Below, one piece after another: positions 38,954 to 44,547 of a DNA stretch of 64,000 bases (position 1 is the stretch's first letter; each line of letters begins with the position of its first letter). The notes beneath the pieces were generated by a model. The model was not told the DNA's origin, did not search any database, and saw only the letters and a list, made by a program, of their open reading frames with translations. The stretch is taken from NCBI GenBank assembly GCA_021613535.1, contig CP075496.1, positions 11,594,001 through 11,658,000 on the forward strand, given 5' to 3'. Source of the stretch: Adineta vaga (taxonomy: Eukaryota > Animalia > Rotifera). A program made the position numbers and the translations under genes.

Positions 38954-39847
38954 AATCGAGCGTTACAAACAATGAGAAAAGATAAAAAAAATAAAACTAA
39001 ATTTTTTCATAAAATAATTCATTTTTTTAAAATTTTGCAACAAGAAAAAAAACGGTTGAATTATAAAATTGAAGGTTTTTATGTAACATAGATTTTTTTA
39101 GCAAAACAATTTCGTAGAAACTTCTAGATTTTCATAACATAGAGAGAGAGAATCGTAAGAGAAATAATTAATAGAAGTGTATAGACATACATATGATTTG
39201 GTTGCGTTGGAAACATTTTTCCTTTCTAAATGTTGTATTTATTCATTTTAACTACATCAAAAACTATTTGCATTGTTAAAATATCAAAATTAACAAAACG
39301 AAAATTTCTTTTCTCTTATTTTTATAAGAAATTATTATGACTGATACACTTTTATTCTCGATCGTGAACAAGTGAATCTCTGTTAATTTCATTGCATCCT
39401 TATTAATCTAATTGTCCTCAAGAATAGAAAGAAAGAAAAAACTGACTATGAACTAAACATTTCTAATTCTTCAATATTTGCATAATAAACAAAATCCATA
39501 CAAGTTTTCTGTTATTAAACGTAATCAACAAGTGAAGCTCTTTCAATGAAAAGATTTCGTTATATCTCAACTTGTCTCCTATGATTTTTAATCAAAGCAC
39601 TTATACTCACAAACATAACCATCATTATTTGCAAGTCGACGTCTTTCTCTCCTTCACTCTCTCTCTCTCTCTCAACAGTCAAATAAAAAGATGAAGGTAA
39701 AAATGCTATGTAAACTATGTTCTTCGATAGAAAAAGAGAACGAAGAAAAAGAAAAAAGAAATACTAGTGACATGGAAACTGTTTGATGTTACTGTAGATG
39801 ATCATTGCGAATTGCTACCATACTTACAATAAAAACAAATAATAAAC

Positions 39848-41479
39848 ATGTCGCATGTAGCACATGCAGCATGTGGTGTTGATGTTTTTCTTTGTTTTAA
39901 TCCTCAATCTACTCAATGTTCATCCGTAGCAACGATTATCCAACAACATTGTTCAAAGTATGAAACTCAAAATTGATTGAGTAAAATAGATAAAAGATTT
40001 TTTGAAATCTTTAGACAAGAAATCATTTATCTAGCATCAGATAATATAGATTTTACGACGAATTGGTATGAATTAATACCAATTCAAATTCTTCGTTCGA
40101 AAATATTCATTCCAATTATTGATGAACAATGGTATTCATCATTTTGGTGTTCTTGGATGCTTTTATTTGCTCTTGTATGTAGATCCATAAAAGACAACAT
40201 ATTTTCTATCAGTTAAATTCTTTTATTTTAAGGAACATGAAAGTCGTTATAGTCTTCCATTGATTATGCCTGTAATTTTACCATCATATGGTGAACGAGC
40301 ATCAGAAGCATTGATTACAAAATTAACAAAAAAATATAAAGCAACGATTATTCTCAATGAAGTAGGAAAATGTTATTATATATTTTGAAATTCAATCTTG
40401 AAATTTTAGCATGAACCAATTAAACAATCACTTGAACCATTATTTAAACTGATTGAATTGACTATTCATACGCCTGAATGGTTATCTAAGAGTGATAAAT
40501 CAAAACGACATGTTGACAGTGAACGACCATTGACATCTGATGAATTCGAGTTTTTAAATGAAATACGACATAAAGAAATCTCTTTGATGAAAGGTTTGAT
40601 AACTTATTCAATTCATACTGTTTATTTTATTTTTATATTTTAAAAAAAGAATTATCATTACAACAAGAACAAAAACTTTCACATCCAAAAAAGTCTTCCA
40701 CAAATCAACACGTAGCATTATCTATTCCATATGAACAATTATCGACATTTTTATTCTCAGTTATGTATGAAAATTTTCATTTAATATGGTTTGATGTTGT
40801 TACAATTGATCAACGACATTATTTTACATTTATTTGGAATGATAATCATCTTTTTCAAAATCGTACATCCGTTCTATTCTATGATCTTAATCCTGCACAA
40901 TTTCATGAAATAACATTAAAAATGAATCGTTATGAATTTGATTTAATACATTTCGATGTTTATTGTCATAGGAATGTAAATATGTTTCATTATATTTGTC
41001 TTTTCTTACGTCATGATTTAAATAAATTATTTAATAAATTACATACACCAATTATATCACATCGATGGATAAATGAAAGTAAACCAAATGCTGTTAATAT
41101 ACGTCCATTGTTATTATGTGGAAATTTATATTATTCAAATTTATTTACATTCAAAGGTTATGATCATAATCGATATCATCGAATAAATTTAACTGATAGT
41201 GAATTACTTGAAGAACATACAAAAGCTTTAATTGATAATTTTAAATTAGTTGATTTAAAAGTTTATCATTTACATAATGGTGATTATCGTTTTGTAGCTC
41301 TATGGACAAAAGAACAAGAAGGTTCATCAATAGTCTTACTTGGTTTAACATATGATGAATTAACTGAACGTTTAAAAGAAAAACAAATTCGACCAAGTAT
41401 TATTACGAATTATGGATTATTAGTTGATGGACAACAATGTTTTGCATTAGTTTGTAATCAATATGAAACGATTCGATGA
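39848..41479 (+). CDS. TIR-like domain plus ~5 BTRD1/polyglycine-hydrolase-like repeats, ~470 aa; exons 39848-39957, 40015-40174, 40233-40361, 40410-40593, 40650-41479
   Basis: TIR segments 'VDVFLCF', 'ILRSKIFIPIIDEQWYSSFWCSWMLLFA' and 'LIMPVIL'; repeats such as 'INLTDSELLEEHTKALIDNFKLVDLKVYHLHNGDYRFVALWTK'; all introns phase-compatible. Confidence 0.75.
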
Positions 41480-41663
41480 ACGATTACTTTTTTTCATATA
41501 CAAACATTGACAAAGGGAAGAAAAAAAAAATTTTATTGTGAAAAAGAAAAAGACGAAACTTATTAGATAAAGATGTTTGGAAAAGAATTTGAATTAAAAA
41601 CGCATACACACATTAGAATGAATCAAGATATCAAAGAAAAATGTATTTGTCTATAAGTATGAA

Positions 41664-44547
41664 TTAATCAATTTTAACAGCTGAATATATTCTACTAACG
41701 AATGTATATGAAGCAATAAAACCGATTGTACCAGTGAGAATCCAGAATGTAAAACAGATTACAAATGTGTAGCCAAAATAAAGTAATGATGGAACAAATC
41801 CAGTTATATCAAGCTAAAATAAAATGAAATTATTGTTTCTTTTTTTTATCTCGGAAATTTCTATAAGTGAATTTCTGTTACTTTAGAGAAGAAGTAGAAA
41901 ATTGAATAGGCAAATACATAAAATGCAGAACCACCTGAAACAATAAATGATCGCCACCACCAATGATAATCTTCTCCACATAATTGAAAATATGTGATGA
42001 CAATTGAAATTTGTGAACATGCAACTAAATAAATCAAATACATATCTTCATAGTTTTACTGTTTATTACTTACTAATGATGATTATAAAGACAAGAAAAA
42101 GAAAACCAAATAAATAATAATATTGATTTTCCCAAATAGCCTAAACGATCATCGAAGATTTATTCGTCAATCCAAAAAGTTCTTCTTCATTTTTTTACCG
42201 TAAAAATAAAAAATAATTCGATGAACATTGCACCAAATGGAAGAACACCTTAGAAAATAATCTCCTATAAAAATTTTCACATTATTCGTCGATTTCTTAC
42301 CAGCAATGAGAGTACTAAATAAAAACATAAATAGATACGTTCAATTCATTGTATTCATTTACCTTATAACTGGATGCATATACCATTGTTGTTCAGGGAT
42401 TTGTTTTGGAATTTGATTTGTTCGTACGGGATGTTCATATGGCTAAAACAAATTCTAGATTTTTTGAGTATGAAATCATGGCACATACTAGTTGACGATA
42501 AGCAAAATAGAATCCAATCCAAACAAGTGGAAATGAAATACCTAACCACATAAGTAATATAGCAAGCATCGTAGAAAATGGTACAGCACCCGATGAACGT
42601 TTTCCCCAGATAAAAAAATTCAAAATAAGGCAAATACTACAAACAACAGATGGATAGAGTGTAGCAGTCTGAAGAAAAAAAAACGCTATCAATCAATGTT
42701 CCATAAAGAATGAATGAACATACTAAGATTGCGGTTTTTCTCCAATTAGTACCTTTGATTGTTTTGTAGATTCGACCAGAAAAGTATCCAGCAATTAAAC
42801 TAATCAAATCCATAAGAATGGTATTTCAATTCAAATAAAATCTATCTACATACCCCATAAAGACATAAAGAAAACAAACAGCTGTTATTAAGGCACCACG
42901 TGATGATGGTGAGAGCATTCCAAGTGCAGCAAAAACTAACCGAAAGAAATCAATTTAGTTTTCTTCTTTTTTTCTAAATCTTTGGTGAAAGAAATACGAA
43001 CCAATAACAATAAATGACATCATAAATAATTGAACACCTGAACCAACAAGAGCTGAAAGAAAATTCTTAGCACGTGGTGGTCGAAATACATCACCATGAA
43101 CCCTAGAGACAAATAAAGAAAGAATTCTTCAAGAATCAATTCAATTCAATAATCAACCAACAATTTCCATCCAGTTTCTTCAATACCTTCATCCTAAATC
43201 AAAATCAAAACCATCTTATCATTTTCTCCTACAAAATCTCATTAATAATAACTAACTGAATCTTCTTGATTATATCGTGCTATATCACGTCGAAGTGTTT
43301 TAACGATAATCATTGCAACAATACCAGCAAGAAAAAAGATGACAATAACTGAATTAATAATAGAAAACCAATGAATTTGAACATCTGACATCGCTAAATA
43401 CGTATCCCAGCTAAAATACAAGATTACAATTGATTTTCTTGTATATAACGAAAATTAGAAATCATCTGATATTTACCGACTTGCCCAACGTGTTTCACTT
43501 GGTGTCCATTCGACTTCATATGTCATCGTAACTTTAGTTTCTCCTAAAAAATCGATTCATTTTCCTATAAAATGAAATCATTACTATGAATAACTTTACC
43601 TTCTGAATTAATTTTTTGCATATTATTTCCACCATCGATTGTACATGTTGTCTCATCGTCAGATTTAATACGACTAGAATCAATACTTTTCGGTTCAACT
43701 TCAAAACCAACCACACGATATACCGTACTTCAGAAAAAATCAATTATTGTCGATATTTTCAATCATCAAATTCATATTTACATACTCAGATTCAGATTCT
43801 TTGTGATAATGTAATCTAATAACCAAATGATTATTTAAAAAGGCTTCGTTCGATTCTTTTGCATATATTCCTAAACGATAACCATGTTCATACATAACGT
43901 CATTTGCGTTAATATTTTGAATTTTTGTAGCACTTGGAAGATTATCTACAAGTCTTGAAAAGAAAAGACAAATATTTCCGAATGAAAACATCGAATTCTC
44001 TTACAAATGTACGAAATATTTTTCTTCGATATGTTTTGCTACTGTTGCACTTTCTTCTGCTGTTAAAGTAATATCTTTACAAAGAACTCGACAAGGAGCA
44101 TTAGTATCCATTTCAACCTAAATCATATTCAATGATTCATCGATTGAAATGATCTTCTCAAAATGCTTTTACTTTAAAATTTGTATTAACAATTCGATCA
44201 CCACGAAGAACTTCGCCTATGTAACAAAATTTATGTTTGCCTATTGAATAGAAAGATTTCTTTACCAAGATTTTCTGATTTATATTGAACACCATCAGAC
44301 GGTTTACAATGAACGGGTAGTTTATAATAATCATACGGTAATTGAGTATTTGAACTCGTCATTTTAACAGCCTGAAAAGGAAGAAGAATAATTATTATTT
44401 TCGTCTACGAATAAAAACAATTACTTTAACTTCAACATCTCCACCTTTTTCAAAATCAAGTGGAGCAACACCGGGAATGTAAAATGAGAAAACTGGTTGA
44501 AATAAATAAATCAAACATAAACAACCACTTAAACCTACGTTGAGCAT
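41664..44547 (-). CDS. TM9SF4: Transmembrane 9 superfamily member 4, many exons
   Basis: '[40 protein letters not shown]', '[10 protein letters not shown]', 'VHGDVFRPP', '[11 protein letters not shown]', C-terminal 'SAVKID'. Confidence 0.93.

Follow-up and report, generated by a model that had tools for sequence, protein, structure and literature searches.

Gene structure and transcripts

The window analysed here, a stretch of 64,000 nucleotides from the rotifer Adineta vaga (contig CP075496.1), carries on its + strand a five-exon gene that joins a TIR-like domain to a predicted five-repeat barrel (Table 1). Direct reading and a script yield a CDS at 39848-41479 that encodes 470 amino acids, identical to the NCBI hypothetical protein I4U23_020886 of Adineta vaga (P0001). 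An earlier note, made from the letters of this DNA, had proposed that five exons form one ORF here, and its coordinates coincide exactly with the CDS. The four introns are short (57, 58, 48 and 56 nt) and each of them runs from GT to AG. Contigs of the runs X1, X2 and X3, which come from two unrelated studies and are probably RNA (this label is a guess, the splicing itself being visible in the contigs), are joined at exactly the four predicted introns, and the genomic run X12 is unspliced at the locus. A genome search of A. vaga returned no copy or paralogue besides the gene itself, which is thus single copy. The searches reported here used single exons first and thereafter P0001, whose sequence is that of the spliced product. 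The GC content of the exons lies between 25 and 37%, with 25% in exon 5, compared to 29% in the window. Allelic or strain differences in the contigs comprise seven synonymous and six non-synonymous changes, four of the latter in the linker; these numbers are too small for use.

Prokaryote-style gene callers working on metagenome contigs call exon 5 alone as an ORF of 275 amino acids, as would be expected if a small TIR gene and an adjoining repeat gene had been falsely joined in the annotation. Such an artefact is ruled out by a single X1 contig (record 1, 897 nt) that crosses all four junctions in frame, so that the TIR exons and the last exon lie in one transcript, a joint that the earlier note had marked for checking. 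Annotations of four bdelloid species and of Brachionus show the full-length architecture as well, and a 588-aa intron-free full-length ORF is present on a 1.9-kb contig of a public sequencing run, which is probably a transcript.

Table 1. Features of the TIR-barrel gene of A. vaga; positions are those of the window, residues those of the 470-aa product.
Feature	Position	Strand	Support
Transcript, approximate extent (5' UTR, CDS, 3' UTR)	39769..41604	+	Spliced X1/X3 contigs begin at 39769/39781; 3' contigs end at 41568-41604; true ends not fixed by contigs
Exon 1, 110 nt, ATG at 39848, residues 1-36 and 2 nt of codon 37	39848..39957	+	Joint 39957>40015 in X1, X3
Exon 2, 160 nt, residues 37-90	40015..40174	+	Joint 40174>40233 in X1, X3
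Exon 3, 129 nt, residues 91-133	40233..40361	+	Joint 40361>40410 in X1, X3
Exon 4, 184 nt, residues 134-194 and 1 nt of codon 195	40410..40593	+	Joint 40593>40650 (GT..AG; equivalent to 40589>40646 cut +4) in X1, X2, X3
Exon 5, 830 nt, residues 195-470 with the TGA stop; last part of linker and entire repeat barrel	40650..41479	+	Reading and script
TIR-like domain, residues about 10-155	39875..40475 (exons 1-4, introns included)	+	AF2 model, Foldseek, VIA-align, Pfam TIR_2
Met85 codon, aligned with the catalytic Glu of NAD-cleaving TIRs	40157..40159	+	Profile alignments to L6 and AtTIR
Long linker helix, residues 176-203, preceded by conserved R-x-x-D-x-x-R-P-L-T motif	40536..40675 (spans intron 4)	+	Model, pLDDT about 50-78
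Barrel repeat 1, residues 214-259, E-H-E-E	40706..40843	+	Model; within 212-468 superposition on 7tpu 13-267
Barrel repeat 2, residues 268-315, E-H-E-E, conserved L-N-P-A-Q motif	40868..41011	+	Model; N275, A277, Q278 nearly invariant in both clades
Barrel repeat 3, residues 324-360, E-H-E-E, most sequence-degenerate	41036..41146	+	Model and repeat alignment
Barrel repeat 4, residues 369-414, E-H-E-E, best Pfam BTRD1 match	41171..41308	+	BTRD1 positions 7-49 of 50 on residues 372-415; pLDDT 90-95
Barrel repeat 5, residues 421-464, E-H-E-E	41327..41458	+	Model

The C-terminal barrel

An AlphaFold2 model built from a 37-sequence alignment has a mean pLDDT of 77 and consists of two domains; a seven-sequence alignment had yielded a pLDDT of 40. 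The C-terminal domain contains five E-H-E-E units, which agrees with the roughly five repeats that had been counted in the last exon. Residues 212-468 superpose on the N-domain of the polyglycine hydrolase 7tpu (chain 13-267) with a Z of 23.3 over 240 residues at 3.1 Å and about 10% identity (VIA-align). A Foldseek search of the model, the comparison with polyglycine hydrolase structures that the earlier note had suggested, returned 7tpu_A as its best match (E 6.5e-7). On the sequence level, Pfam BTRD1 (PF17660) gives 20.1 bits on the full A. vaga protein and 22.8 bits (E 8.5e-5) on exon 5 alone, just under the cut-off of 23. However, the orthologs reach 24.3-26.7 bits and monogonont-type members up to 40.3 bits, and 32 of the 37 family members match at E <= 0.01, the best at E 3.1e-10. 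The suggested Pfam search thus gave matches that recur across the family, with sub-threshold scores for the A. vaga protein itself, and together with the superposition it upholds the proposal that the repeats are of BTRD1 type and related to polyglycine hydrolases. The N-domain of these enzymes has been described as five EHEE repeats of about 44 residues that close into a barrel, and its function has been called unknown (PMC9912923). A MAFFT alignment of the five rotifer repeats against one another left no column invariant, indicating that they are structural rather than sequence repeats, like those of 7tpu. Thus, the predicted C-terminal closed barrel is homologous to BTRD1 and the polyglycine hydrolase N-domain. 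In the linker region that precedes it, R166, D169, R172, P173, L174, E178 and F181 are invariant in the family.

The rotifer protein and the fungal polyglycine hydrolases (Fvan-cmp, 7tpu) have in common the closed barrel of five E-H-E-E units, a repeat length of about 45-50 residues and little conservation between repeats. In contrast to the fungal enzymes, the rotifer barrel is C-terminal and fused to a predicted cytosolic TIR, and the protein terminates with it: the beta-lactamase-like C-domain with its nucleophilic serine is missing, and no hydrolase domain was found (Pfam PF00144 and PF13354 are without match). A signal peptide is missing as well, since no leader is apparent at the N-terminus, where the bA strand of the TIR starts at residue 13 in the model. 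Lacking catalytic domain and signal peptide, the rotifer protein is not a polyglycine hydrolase.

The TIR-like domain

The N-terminal part of the model shows the order bA-aA-bB-aB-bC-aC-bD-aD-bE-aE with a pLDDT of mostly 65-88, and this predicted flavodoxin-like, five-stranded alpha/beta TIR fold superposes on solved TIRs. Foldseek assigns a probability of 1.0 to matches with the TIRs of RUN1, L6, MyD88, SNC1, SARM1, TRAM and Mal, and in VIA-align TIR chains, which match model residues 3-161, make up 49 of the best 50 rows. With one exception among these listed chains, the Z is 12.2-14.7 and the rmsd 2.2-3.4 Å, with 123-148 residues aligned. Sequence comparisons give a fainter signal. Pfam TIR_2 (PF13676), a search proposed in the earlier note, matches recurrently in the bdelloids (E 1e-3 to 1e-4 and 20-23.2 bits in six of six full-length orthologs), but the gathering cut-off of 28 is not reached. 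The TIR family PF01582 has no match in the protein, and TIR_2 has none in two monogonont-type full-length proteins, which is why the TIR assignment depends mainly on the predicted model, with weak support from sequence. Searches of PDB with profiles of the TIR region were weak (E 0.03-0.2) and did not gain from added monogonont-type sequences. The TIR exons taken singly (36, 53 and 43 aa) have no Pfam match because the pieces are too short; the signal appears only on the whole protein. Boxes that can be aligned to L6 and AtTIR are found at bA (D-V-F-L-S-F type), bC (S-K-x-x-I-x-I-I-S type) and aC (S-x-W-C), although the W-C box of aC is absent from the monogonont-type clade. At the N-terminus, the motif M-S-H-x-x-H-x-x-C-G is invariant. 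The TIR pattern that had been read from the N-terminus is hence borne out by the match of the model to solved TIRs (Z 12-14.7) and by sub-threshold TIR_2 matches.

The earlier note had also called the domain pseudo-catalytic. Profile alignment pairs FWCSWMLL of the rotifer protein with KWCLMELA of L6 and SWCLDELV of AtTIR, so that Met85 stands opposite the glutamate of WCLxEL, a position set by sequence alignment and not by structural superposition. The column holds methionine in bdelloids and leucine in Brachionus and in P0048, and a glutamate occurs in it nowhere in the alignment of the whole family. To our knowledge, the catalytic aC glutamate is needed in all characterised TIR NADases, and the domain, which does not have it, is predicted to be unable to cleave NAD+ in the known way, as the term pseudo-catalytic had implied. 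One might argue that the TIR still acts as an enzyme, using another acidic residue or taking nucleic acid or another substrate, with the barrel as a regulatory or substrate-recruiting part. Enzymatic TIRs such as RUN1, L6, SARM1, AbTir and SPARTA are indeed among the structural neighbours, and monogonont-type proteins have a glutamate a few residues upstream in aC (L-E-N/C-D/E). This residue is not kept in bdelloids, however, and given the methionine or leucine in a column that is indispensable in the characterised enzymes we consider catalysis very unlikely.

A missing catalytic glutamate, together with the fold itself, is what the rotifer TIR shares with scaffold TIRs (MyD88, Mal/TIRAP, TRAM and the non-catalytic plant RRS1), and the model superposes on MyD88, Mal and the RRS1/RPS4 pair with a Z of about 12-13.4. 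Unlike these adaptors, the rotifer protein has neither a death domain nor a recognisable BB-loop proline motif of the TLR/MyD88 class: reading residues 45-60 did not reveal an R-D-x-x-P-G type motif, in a loop that is modelled at lower confidence. Its motifs D-V-F-L-x-F, S-K-I-F-I-P-I-I and S-x-W-C are plant/bacterial TIR_2-like.

Orthologs, age and selection

We show here that the TIR-barrel gene is neither bdelloid-specific nor recent. Brachionus calyciflorus has a collinear ortholog (26% identity over the full length, E 5e-41) in which all four introns occupy identical positions and phases, exon 1 has the same length and phase and exon 2 the same length (160 nt); the Brachionus exons were joined solely to locate intron boundaries on the annotated protein. 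Exon 5 is uninterrupted also in A. ricciae, Rotaria and Brachionus. Since the fused five-exon gene with all its introns is present in Brachionus, any transfer has to be older than the split between bdelloids and monogononts. Orthologs among the bdelloid genera are one-to-one with 72-87% identity, synteny with EMP70 is conserved, and exon 5 compared with A. ricciae has a dN of 0.071 and a dS of 1.07 (dN/dS about 0.07). Thus, purifying selection on the gene is strong. Diversity is higher in the monogonont-type clade, which comprises about 18 clusters at 50% identity. No other named animal among 1.84 billion representative proteins has a relative of the gene, and what had been announced as an animal gene is more precisely a rotifer gene.

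The pairing of BTRD1 with TIR had been thought unusual, and we found no description of it in the literature on BTRD1/PF17660, in TIR-DC catalogues or in work on rotifer TIR proteins (the catalogue of Gerdol et al., 2017 lying outside this scope). Within that literature, the combination of a BTRD1-type barrel with TIR is previously undescribed.

Origin of the barrel

A PF17660 scan of the A. vaga genome identified a canonical BTRD1 and beta-lactamase gene, I4U23_023380 on chromosome 5, and did not flag the TIR-barrel gene, which is too diverged for this profile. I4U23_023380 is intron-less, encodes a leader peptide, scores 312 bits to BTRD1 and is 50-60% identical to bacterial serine hydrolases, traits that mark it as a clear candidate for horizontal transfer of the recent type. 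Both genes have the genome and the five-repeat barrel family in common; the TIR-barrel gene, in contrast, has introns and no leader. We rejected a recent derivation of one barrel from the other: when the bdelloid barrel profile was aligned with hhalign to the canonical BTRD1 domain of A. vaga, the match was insignificant (probability 2.7%, E 0.017) and displaced by one repeat.

Outside rotifers, sequence relatives of the barrel among the 1.84 billion representatives are bacterial only and of very low similarity. Structurally, its Atlas neighbours come from bacteria or fungi and are mostly hydrolase-fused, the eukaryotic ones being Ascomycota only, and its language-model neighbours are all BTRD1/DUF7477 clusters from bacteria or fungi. 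The rotifer C-terminal profile retrieves the canonical bacterial 5xBTRD1 proteins P0040 (M23 + 5xBTRD1, E 2e-5) and P0043 (a secreted 5xBTRD1 protein, E 1e-4; both library-wide), and in pattern scans covering 185,579 prokaryotic species genomes a close relative did not turn up. Bacterial BTRD1/DUF7477 proteins, which form the closest Atlas clusters in both structure and features, share fold and family signal with the rotifer barrel. They are stand-alone barrels or fused to Peptidase_M23, Beta-lactamase, papain-like C1/C70 or astacin domains; unlike the rotifer protein they are intron-less, carry hydrophobic leaders and have secreted hydrolases and no TIR as partners. A published survey of the fold gives a similar distribution, with 30 bacterial and 20 fungal proteins among the top 50 hits (supplement of PMC9912923). 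Since the relatives found outside rotifers come without exception from bacteria or fungi, a horizontal origin of the barrel is plausible. The barrel would have passed from a microbe into the rotifer stem lineage and been fused to TIR before bdelloids and monogononts separated.

The acquisition that the earlier note had proposed fits the exclusively microbial relatives found, but not the features of the gene: the marks of foreign DNA (absence of introns, deviant composition, restriction to bdelloids) are missing, and instead there are four introns, a host-like GC content and a Brachionus ortholog with the same introns. The further inference of a chimera from an intron-bearing TIR part and a repeat block in one exon proved weak, because exon 5 already begins some 18 residues upstream of the barrel, within the linker, and a fusion cannot be dated from where introns lie.

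Two other histories have to be weighed against a microbial barrel fused within rotifers. A bacterial TIR-BTRD1 protein could have been acquired as a unit and gained its introns later, with no fusion in an animal. TIR and BTRD1 are each common in bacteria, and the rotifer TIR is nearer to the TIR_2 (bacterial/plant-like) profile than to the animal TLR/MyD88 type. However, the structural and feature neighbours include no cluster that unites TIR with BTRD1, the prokaryotic genome scans are negative, the four introns (three of them within the TIR) were already common to bdelloids and monogononts, and the more than 100 resident TIR_2 genes of A. vaga offer a possible source of the TIR. We hold transfer of the whole gene to be very unlikely. 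Alternatively, the barrel may be an ancient eukaryotic or metazoan one, retained in rotifers while other lineages lost it or changed it beyond recognition, with no horizontal transfer at all. The fold has been described as present across all kingdoms (PMC9912923), composition and introns are fully native, and the extreme divergence of rotifer from microbial barrels (10% identity to 7tpu, library E about 1e-5) is what great age predicts. Against this history stand the purely bacterial matches outside the rotifer-type family, the limitation of eukaryotic Atlas neighbours to Ascomycota and the many independent losses that it would require, and we judge vertical descent unlikely.

Discussion

Taken together, we favor a joint reading in which the spliced TIR-barrel gene encodes a predicted cytosolic adaptor or sensor with a scaffold TIR and a microbe-derived barrel, fused before the bdelloid-monogonont split; we put its probability at roughly 0.55. 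In bacteria and fungi the barrel accompanies secreted peptidases and beta-lactamase-like hydrolases as a non-catalytic accessory module, and in the putative rotifer adaptor it would form the ligand- or protein-binding end. As a domain predicted not to cleave NAD+ in the known way, the TIR would signal as a scaffold via TIR-TIR assembly, in which its partners would be further copies of itself or some among the at least 100 other TIR proteins of A. vaga. The genome of this species contains at least 105 TIR_2 matches, and other TIR genes have expanded in tandem clusters, which the TIR-barrel gene has not. Immune receptors that diversify do not typically show one-to-one orthology, a single copy and slow evolution, which counts against the joint reading as a whole; of the two roles, a conserved adaptor seems to agree better with a single, slowly evolving copy than a diversifying receptor does.

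The same observations would also suit a housekeeping or developmental adaptor in which TIR and barrel are mere protein-protein modules and microbes are not sensed. One-to-one orthologs across the bdelloid genera, the low dN/dS, the conserved synteny, transcripts in runs from two unrelated studies and a position outside the tandem TIR clusters are all in line with such a role. However, nothing in the data points positively to a particular cellular role, animal TIR domains are overwhelmingly linked to immune or injury signalling, and the monogonont-type clade with its about 18 clusters is more diverse. We regard a non-immune scaffold as rather unlikely.

At the other end, the barrel could be a ligand-recognition module captured from microbes that, coupled to a scaffold TIR, makes up a new class of cytosolic pattern-recognition receptors in rotifers, an idea that we regard as quite doubtful. 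By analogy, glycine-rich peptides or cell-wall fragments might be candidate ligands, because the barrel travels with polyglycine hydrolases, which cleave Gly-Gly bonds, and with M23 peptidases. If this receptor reading were true, it would add a pattern-recognition receptor class to a phylum whose surveyed members are largely without TLRs, and it would open, for the first time, a way to the function of the BTRD1 fold.

Bdelloids are known for recent whole-gene transfers. If the barrel is microbial, the TIR-barrel gene would contrast with these as an old horizontal transfer on the level of a domain, followed by fusion to a host domain, and I4U23_023380 offers a recent-type whole-gene comparison in the same genome. 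A. vaga has been reported to lack TLRs (PMC8609888), and yet its genome has more than 100 TIR genes, which makes the TIR-barrel protein a candidate member of some non-canonical network of TIR signalling. The N-domain of polyglycine hydrolases is a recently solved fold that is catalogued almost only in secreted hydrolases of bacteria and fungi. In rotifers this fold is predicted to be intracellular, joined to a signalling domain and conserved since before bdelloids and monogononts separated. The fusion and the strong purifying selection since before this split argue for an autonomous binding module, and the rotifer gene thus offers a tractable system for identifying the binding partner of the barrel.

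Gene structure and transcripts

The AT-rich window (GC about 29%) lies on chromosome-scale contig 4 of the A. vaga assembly (100.8 Mb, six contigs). Direct reading gives five exons (table); the four introns between them measure 57, 58, 48 and 56 nt, and all have the GT..AG boundaries. The spliced product of 470 aa is identical to the NCBI hypothetical protein I4U23_020886, found by a protein search with exon 5 that also assigns the window to the bdelloid rotifer Adineta vaga; exons were searched singly, and later protein analyses used the database entry. The interval 39848-41479, which an earlier note had assigned to the gene, is exactly this coding sequence, and its five exons form one frame. 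The stretch is present wholly or partly in 17 public sequencing runs, and contigs of four were examined. Runs X1, X2 and X3, from two studies, are guessed to be RNA; as assembled contigs they give no expression levels. In X1 and X3, contigs lack each of the four predicted introns (39957>40015, 40174>40233, 40361>40410 and 40593>40650, the last read after a +4 shift of the reported position), X2 contigs show the last joint only, and contigs of the genomic run X12 are colinear with the window DNA. A single X1 contig of 897 nt, from 39781 to 40896, spans all four joints. Because spliced contigs join the TIR exons to exon 5, a wrong joining of two neighbouring genes is excluded. Downstream, in convergent orientation, lies a spliced gene for EMP70/TM9SF (nonaspanin), with ORF fragments that match PF02990 (E 9e-22 and 2e-17). 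In A. ricciae this gene also lies behind the ortholog, hence synteny is conserved.

Features of the TIR-BTRD1 gene and of related loci (window positions or residues of I4U23_020886 unless a locus is named; G000, A. vaga genome; C3-C5, its chromosomes; L005, L008, L014, extracted loci)
Feature	Position	Strand	Basis or remark
TIR-BTRD1 exon 1	39848-39957	+	direct reading of window 39400-41900
TIR-BTRD1 exon 2	40015-40174	+	direct reading of window
TIR-BTRD1 exon 3	40233-40361	+	direct reading of window
TIR-BTRD1 exon 4	40410-40593	+	direct reading of window
TIR-BTRD1 exon 5	40650-41479	+	direct reading of window
N-terminal motif M-S-H-x-x-H-x-x-C-G-x-D-x-F	39848-39889, residues 1-14		
Met85 codon	40157-40159	+	profile alignment to L6 and AtTIR
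Linker motif R-(Y/H)-x-D-x-x-R-P-(L/M)-(T/S)-x-x-E-x-x-F	40506-40552, residues 166-181		
Barrel repeat 1	residues 214-259		E-H-E-E, AlphaFold2 model
Barrel repeat 2	residues 268-315		E-H-E-E, AlphaFold2 model
Barrel repeat 3	residues 324-360		E-H-E-E, AlphaFold2 model
Barrel repeat 4	residues 369-414		E-H-E-E, AlphaFold2 model
Barrel repeat 5	residues 421-464		E-H-E-E, AlphaFold2 model
EMP70/TM9SF gene	41864-42692 and beyond	-	
I4U23_023380	G000:C5:5002848-5004773 (L008:298-2223)	-	intron-less frame
Two TIR_2-matching frames	G000:C5:4980505-4992762		574 and 812 aa
Example TIR_2 region	C5:11689865-11758462		genome-wide TIR_2 search
Example TIR_2 region	C4:7675527-7683976		genome-wide TIR_2 search
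Example TIR_2 region	C3:4255333-4266404		genome-wide TIR_2 search
Divergent family member	L005:5142-7071		metagenome scaffold
Divergent family member	L014:5001-5954		metagenome scaffold

Domain assignment

At the sequence level, Pfam matches to both domains are weak but reproducible across bdelloid orthologs. TIR_2 matches residues 13-108/120 of I4U23_020886 and of every bdelloid ortholog at E 1e-3 to 1e-4 (20-23 bits, cut-off 28), and BTRD1 matches the full-length bdelloid orthologs at E 6e-4 to 1.6e-5, with several members exceeding the 23-bit cut-off. In the 37-sequence family alignment A3, 32 members match BTRD1 (best E 3.1e-10) and six match TIR_2. AlphaFold2 reached a pLDDT of 40 with seven close sequences and a mean of 77 with A3 (80-95 across most of the C-terminal half), and predicts a beta-alpha N-domain (residues ~10-155), a long helix (176-203) and five barrel repeats. 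The top Foldseek match in the PDB is the polyglycine hydrolase Fvan-cmp (7tpu_A, E 6.5e-7), followed by many TIR domains at probability 1.0 (RUN1, L6, MyD88, SNC1, SARM1, TRAM, Mal). VIA-align superposes model residues 212-468 on 7tpu residues 13-267 (Z 23.3, rmsd 3.1 A, 240 residues), a range that is the 7tpu N-domain, described as a barrel of five EHEE repeats of 44 residues with a function unknown to its authors (PMC9912923). In the ESM-Atlas, every neighbour, whether found by shape or by language-model features, is a BTRD1/DUF7477 cluster, and all are bacterial except for one Ascomycota cluster of polyglycine-hydrolase relatives; structural neighbours mostly carry fused Beta-lactamase, M23, papain-like or astacin domains, and feature neighbours are stand-alone barrels. 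In the reverse direction, the rotifer C-terminal profile retrieved canonical bacterial proteins from 1.84 billion representatives at library-wide E 2e-5 and 1e-4, namely P0040, with five strong BTRD1 repeats and Peptidase_M23, and P0043, from a bacterial genome, which is secreted and has 5xBTRD1 as a stand-alone barrel. Pfam, the fold match, the Atlas neighbours and the reverse retrieval together give good support to the repeat block as a BTRD1 homologue, and the five repeats first read from the DNA correspond to five modelled units. The TIR reading of the N-terminus likewise held up; it draws mostly on the predicted fold (Z 12.2-14.7 on TIR chains, 123-148 residues), with weak, consistent sequence signals in addition.

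When the protein is aligned by profile with flax L6 and Arabidopsis AtTIR, the W-C box matches and Met85 falls opposite the Glu of W-C-L-x-E-L, the residue regarded as catalytic in the literature on TIR NADases. This column of A3 is Met in every bdelloid and Leu in the two full-length proteins of the monogonont-type clade. With Met or Leu at this position, as placed by sequence alignment and not by structure, the term 'pseudo-catalytic' used in the earlier note is justified. The protein has no hydrophobic leader, its first TIR strand starting at residue 13, whereas canonical BTRD1 proteins have leader peptides; the barrel has therefore moved from a secreted to a cytosolic context. From bdelloids to Brachionus and a distant metagenomic member the N-terminal motif does not vary, yet it is modelled at pLDDT < 50; it may bind metal or serve in docking. 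The conserved linker motif (R-x-x-D-x-x-R-P-L-T) lies directly ahead of the long helix and is common to both rotifer clades.

Distribution and age

Orthologs of 470-471 aa share 87% (A. ricciae), 77% (A. steineri) and 72-73% (Rotaria species, over exon 5) identity, and the gene is single copy in the A. vaga haploid assembly. For exon 5 of A. vaga and A. ricciae, dN is 0.071 and dS 1.07, evidence of strong purifying selection. The search of representatives returned only 25 proteins in total, all but three from the TIR-BTRD1 family. Among them, CAF0947594 of the monogonont Brachionus calyciflorus (UniRef name 'TIR domain-containing protein') aligns end to end with the A. vaga protein (26% identity, E 5e-41) and has the same N-terminal M-S-H-x-x-H-x-x-C-G. 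Its exons measure 110, 160, 147, 172 and 1022 nt, compared with 110, 160, 129, 184 and 830 nt in A. vaga, and all four introns are identical in position and phase. A 588-aa full-length relative is encoded on an intron-free 1.9-kb contig, probably a transcript, assembled from a public sequencing run. Two divergent members lie on marine-looking 'GROS21' metagenome scaffolds that are animal-like, with intron-split calpain, GPCR (7tm_1) and PGI fragments, one member being flanked by calpain and GPCR genes. For the L005 member, a 274-aa ORF immediately upstream encodes the TIR-like part and apparently reads through an in-frame intron at the intron 1 position. All metagenomic members without species name have the monogonont-type C-terminus. 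Given the full-length Brachionus ortholog, its four common introns and the other relatives, the fused gene predates the bdelloid-monogonont split. No named non-rotifer animal member was found among the 1.84 billion representatives, and as far as their named taxa go, TIR-BTRD1 is an ancient, rotifer-restricted architecture.

Origin of the barrel

A horizontal origin of the barrel, as the earlier note proposed, is plausible because the fold is known from microbes: of the 50 best Foldseek hits to the 7tpu N-domain, 30 are bacterial and 20 fungal (PMC9912923 supplement), and sequence matches outside the family are bacterial only. Identity to microbial barrels, however, is only ~10-23%, so that no trustworthy tree can be built, exon 5 has a GC of 25% like its surroundings, and the introns are old; moreover, no close relative turned up when 185,579 prokaryotic species genomes were scanned by pattern. 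Vertical descent of the barrel with loss elsewhere is an alternative explanation, and acquisition of an entire bacterial TIR-BTRD1 gene is a further, less likely one. The contrast between intron-rich TIR exons and a single-exon repeat block, once taken as a sign of a chimera, is weak, since exon 5 starts inside the linker, ~18 residues ahead of the barrel.

On chromosome 5, A. vaga carries another BTRD1 gene, the canonical I4U23_023380. The 633-aa product has a hydrophobic leader; its five canonical repeats score 312 bits and its Beta-lactamase domain 168 bits, and the architecture is like that of polyglycine hydrolases. Identity to Adineta orthologs is 75-78%, and the next matches are bacterial serine hydrolases (50-60%), which makes the gene a clear candidate for horizontal transfer and a model of recent bdelloid acquisition of the module. 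Comparison by hhalign showed no close relation between its barrel and the TIR-fused one (E 0.017). Two TIR_2-matching frames lie 11-23 kb from I4U23_023380; this proximity may be coincidence.

Function and significance

Besides its anatomy, expression, conservation and missing catalytic Glu, which we show here, we infer for the protein an adaptor- or sensor-like function. The barrel would be the binding end, and the TIR would signal via homotypic assembly in the manner of scaffold TIRs, with a partner that could be the protein itself or some of the at least 105 TIR_2-matching loci of A. vaga. Many of these genome-wide Pfam matches lie in tandem clusters and in open frames of considerable length; in a sample of four ORFs (381-611 aa), the TIR_2 domains are strong (65-96 bits) but vary in position, and their remainder has no Pfam match. 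Any such TIR network would be non-canonical, as A. vaga is reported to have no TLRs (PMC8609888). A gene present once, with one-to-one orthologs and a slow rate of change, looks more like a conserved adaptor than a diversifying receptor; a scaffold function outside immunity has to be taken seriously as an alternative.

TIR and BTRD1 are each already known as families. Automatic annotation names the Brachionus protein as one with a TIR domain and assigns PF17660 to some fragments of exon 5; the entries for full-length proteins come without a precomputed Pfam domain, and we found no description of the combination in the literature. The gene is of moderate interest, chiefly as a way into the study of an orphan fold and of TIR signalling without TLRs.
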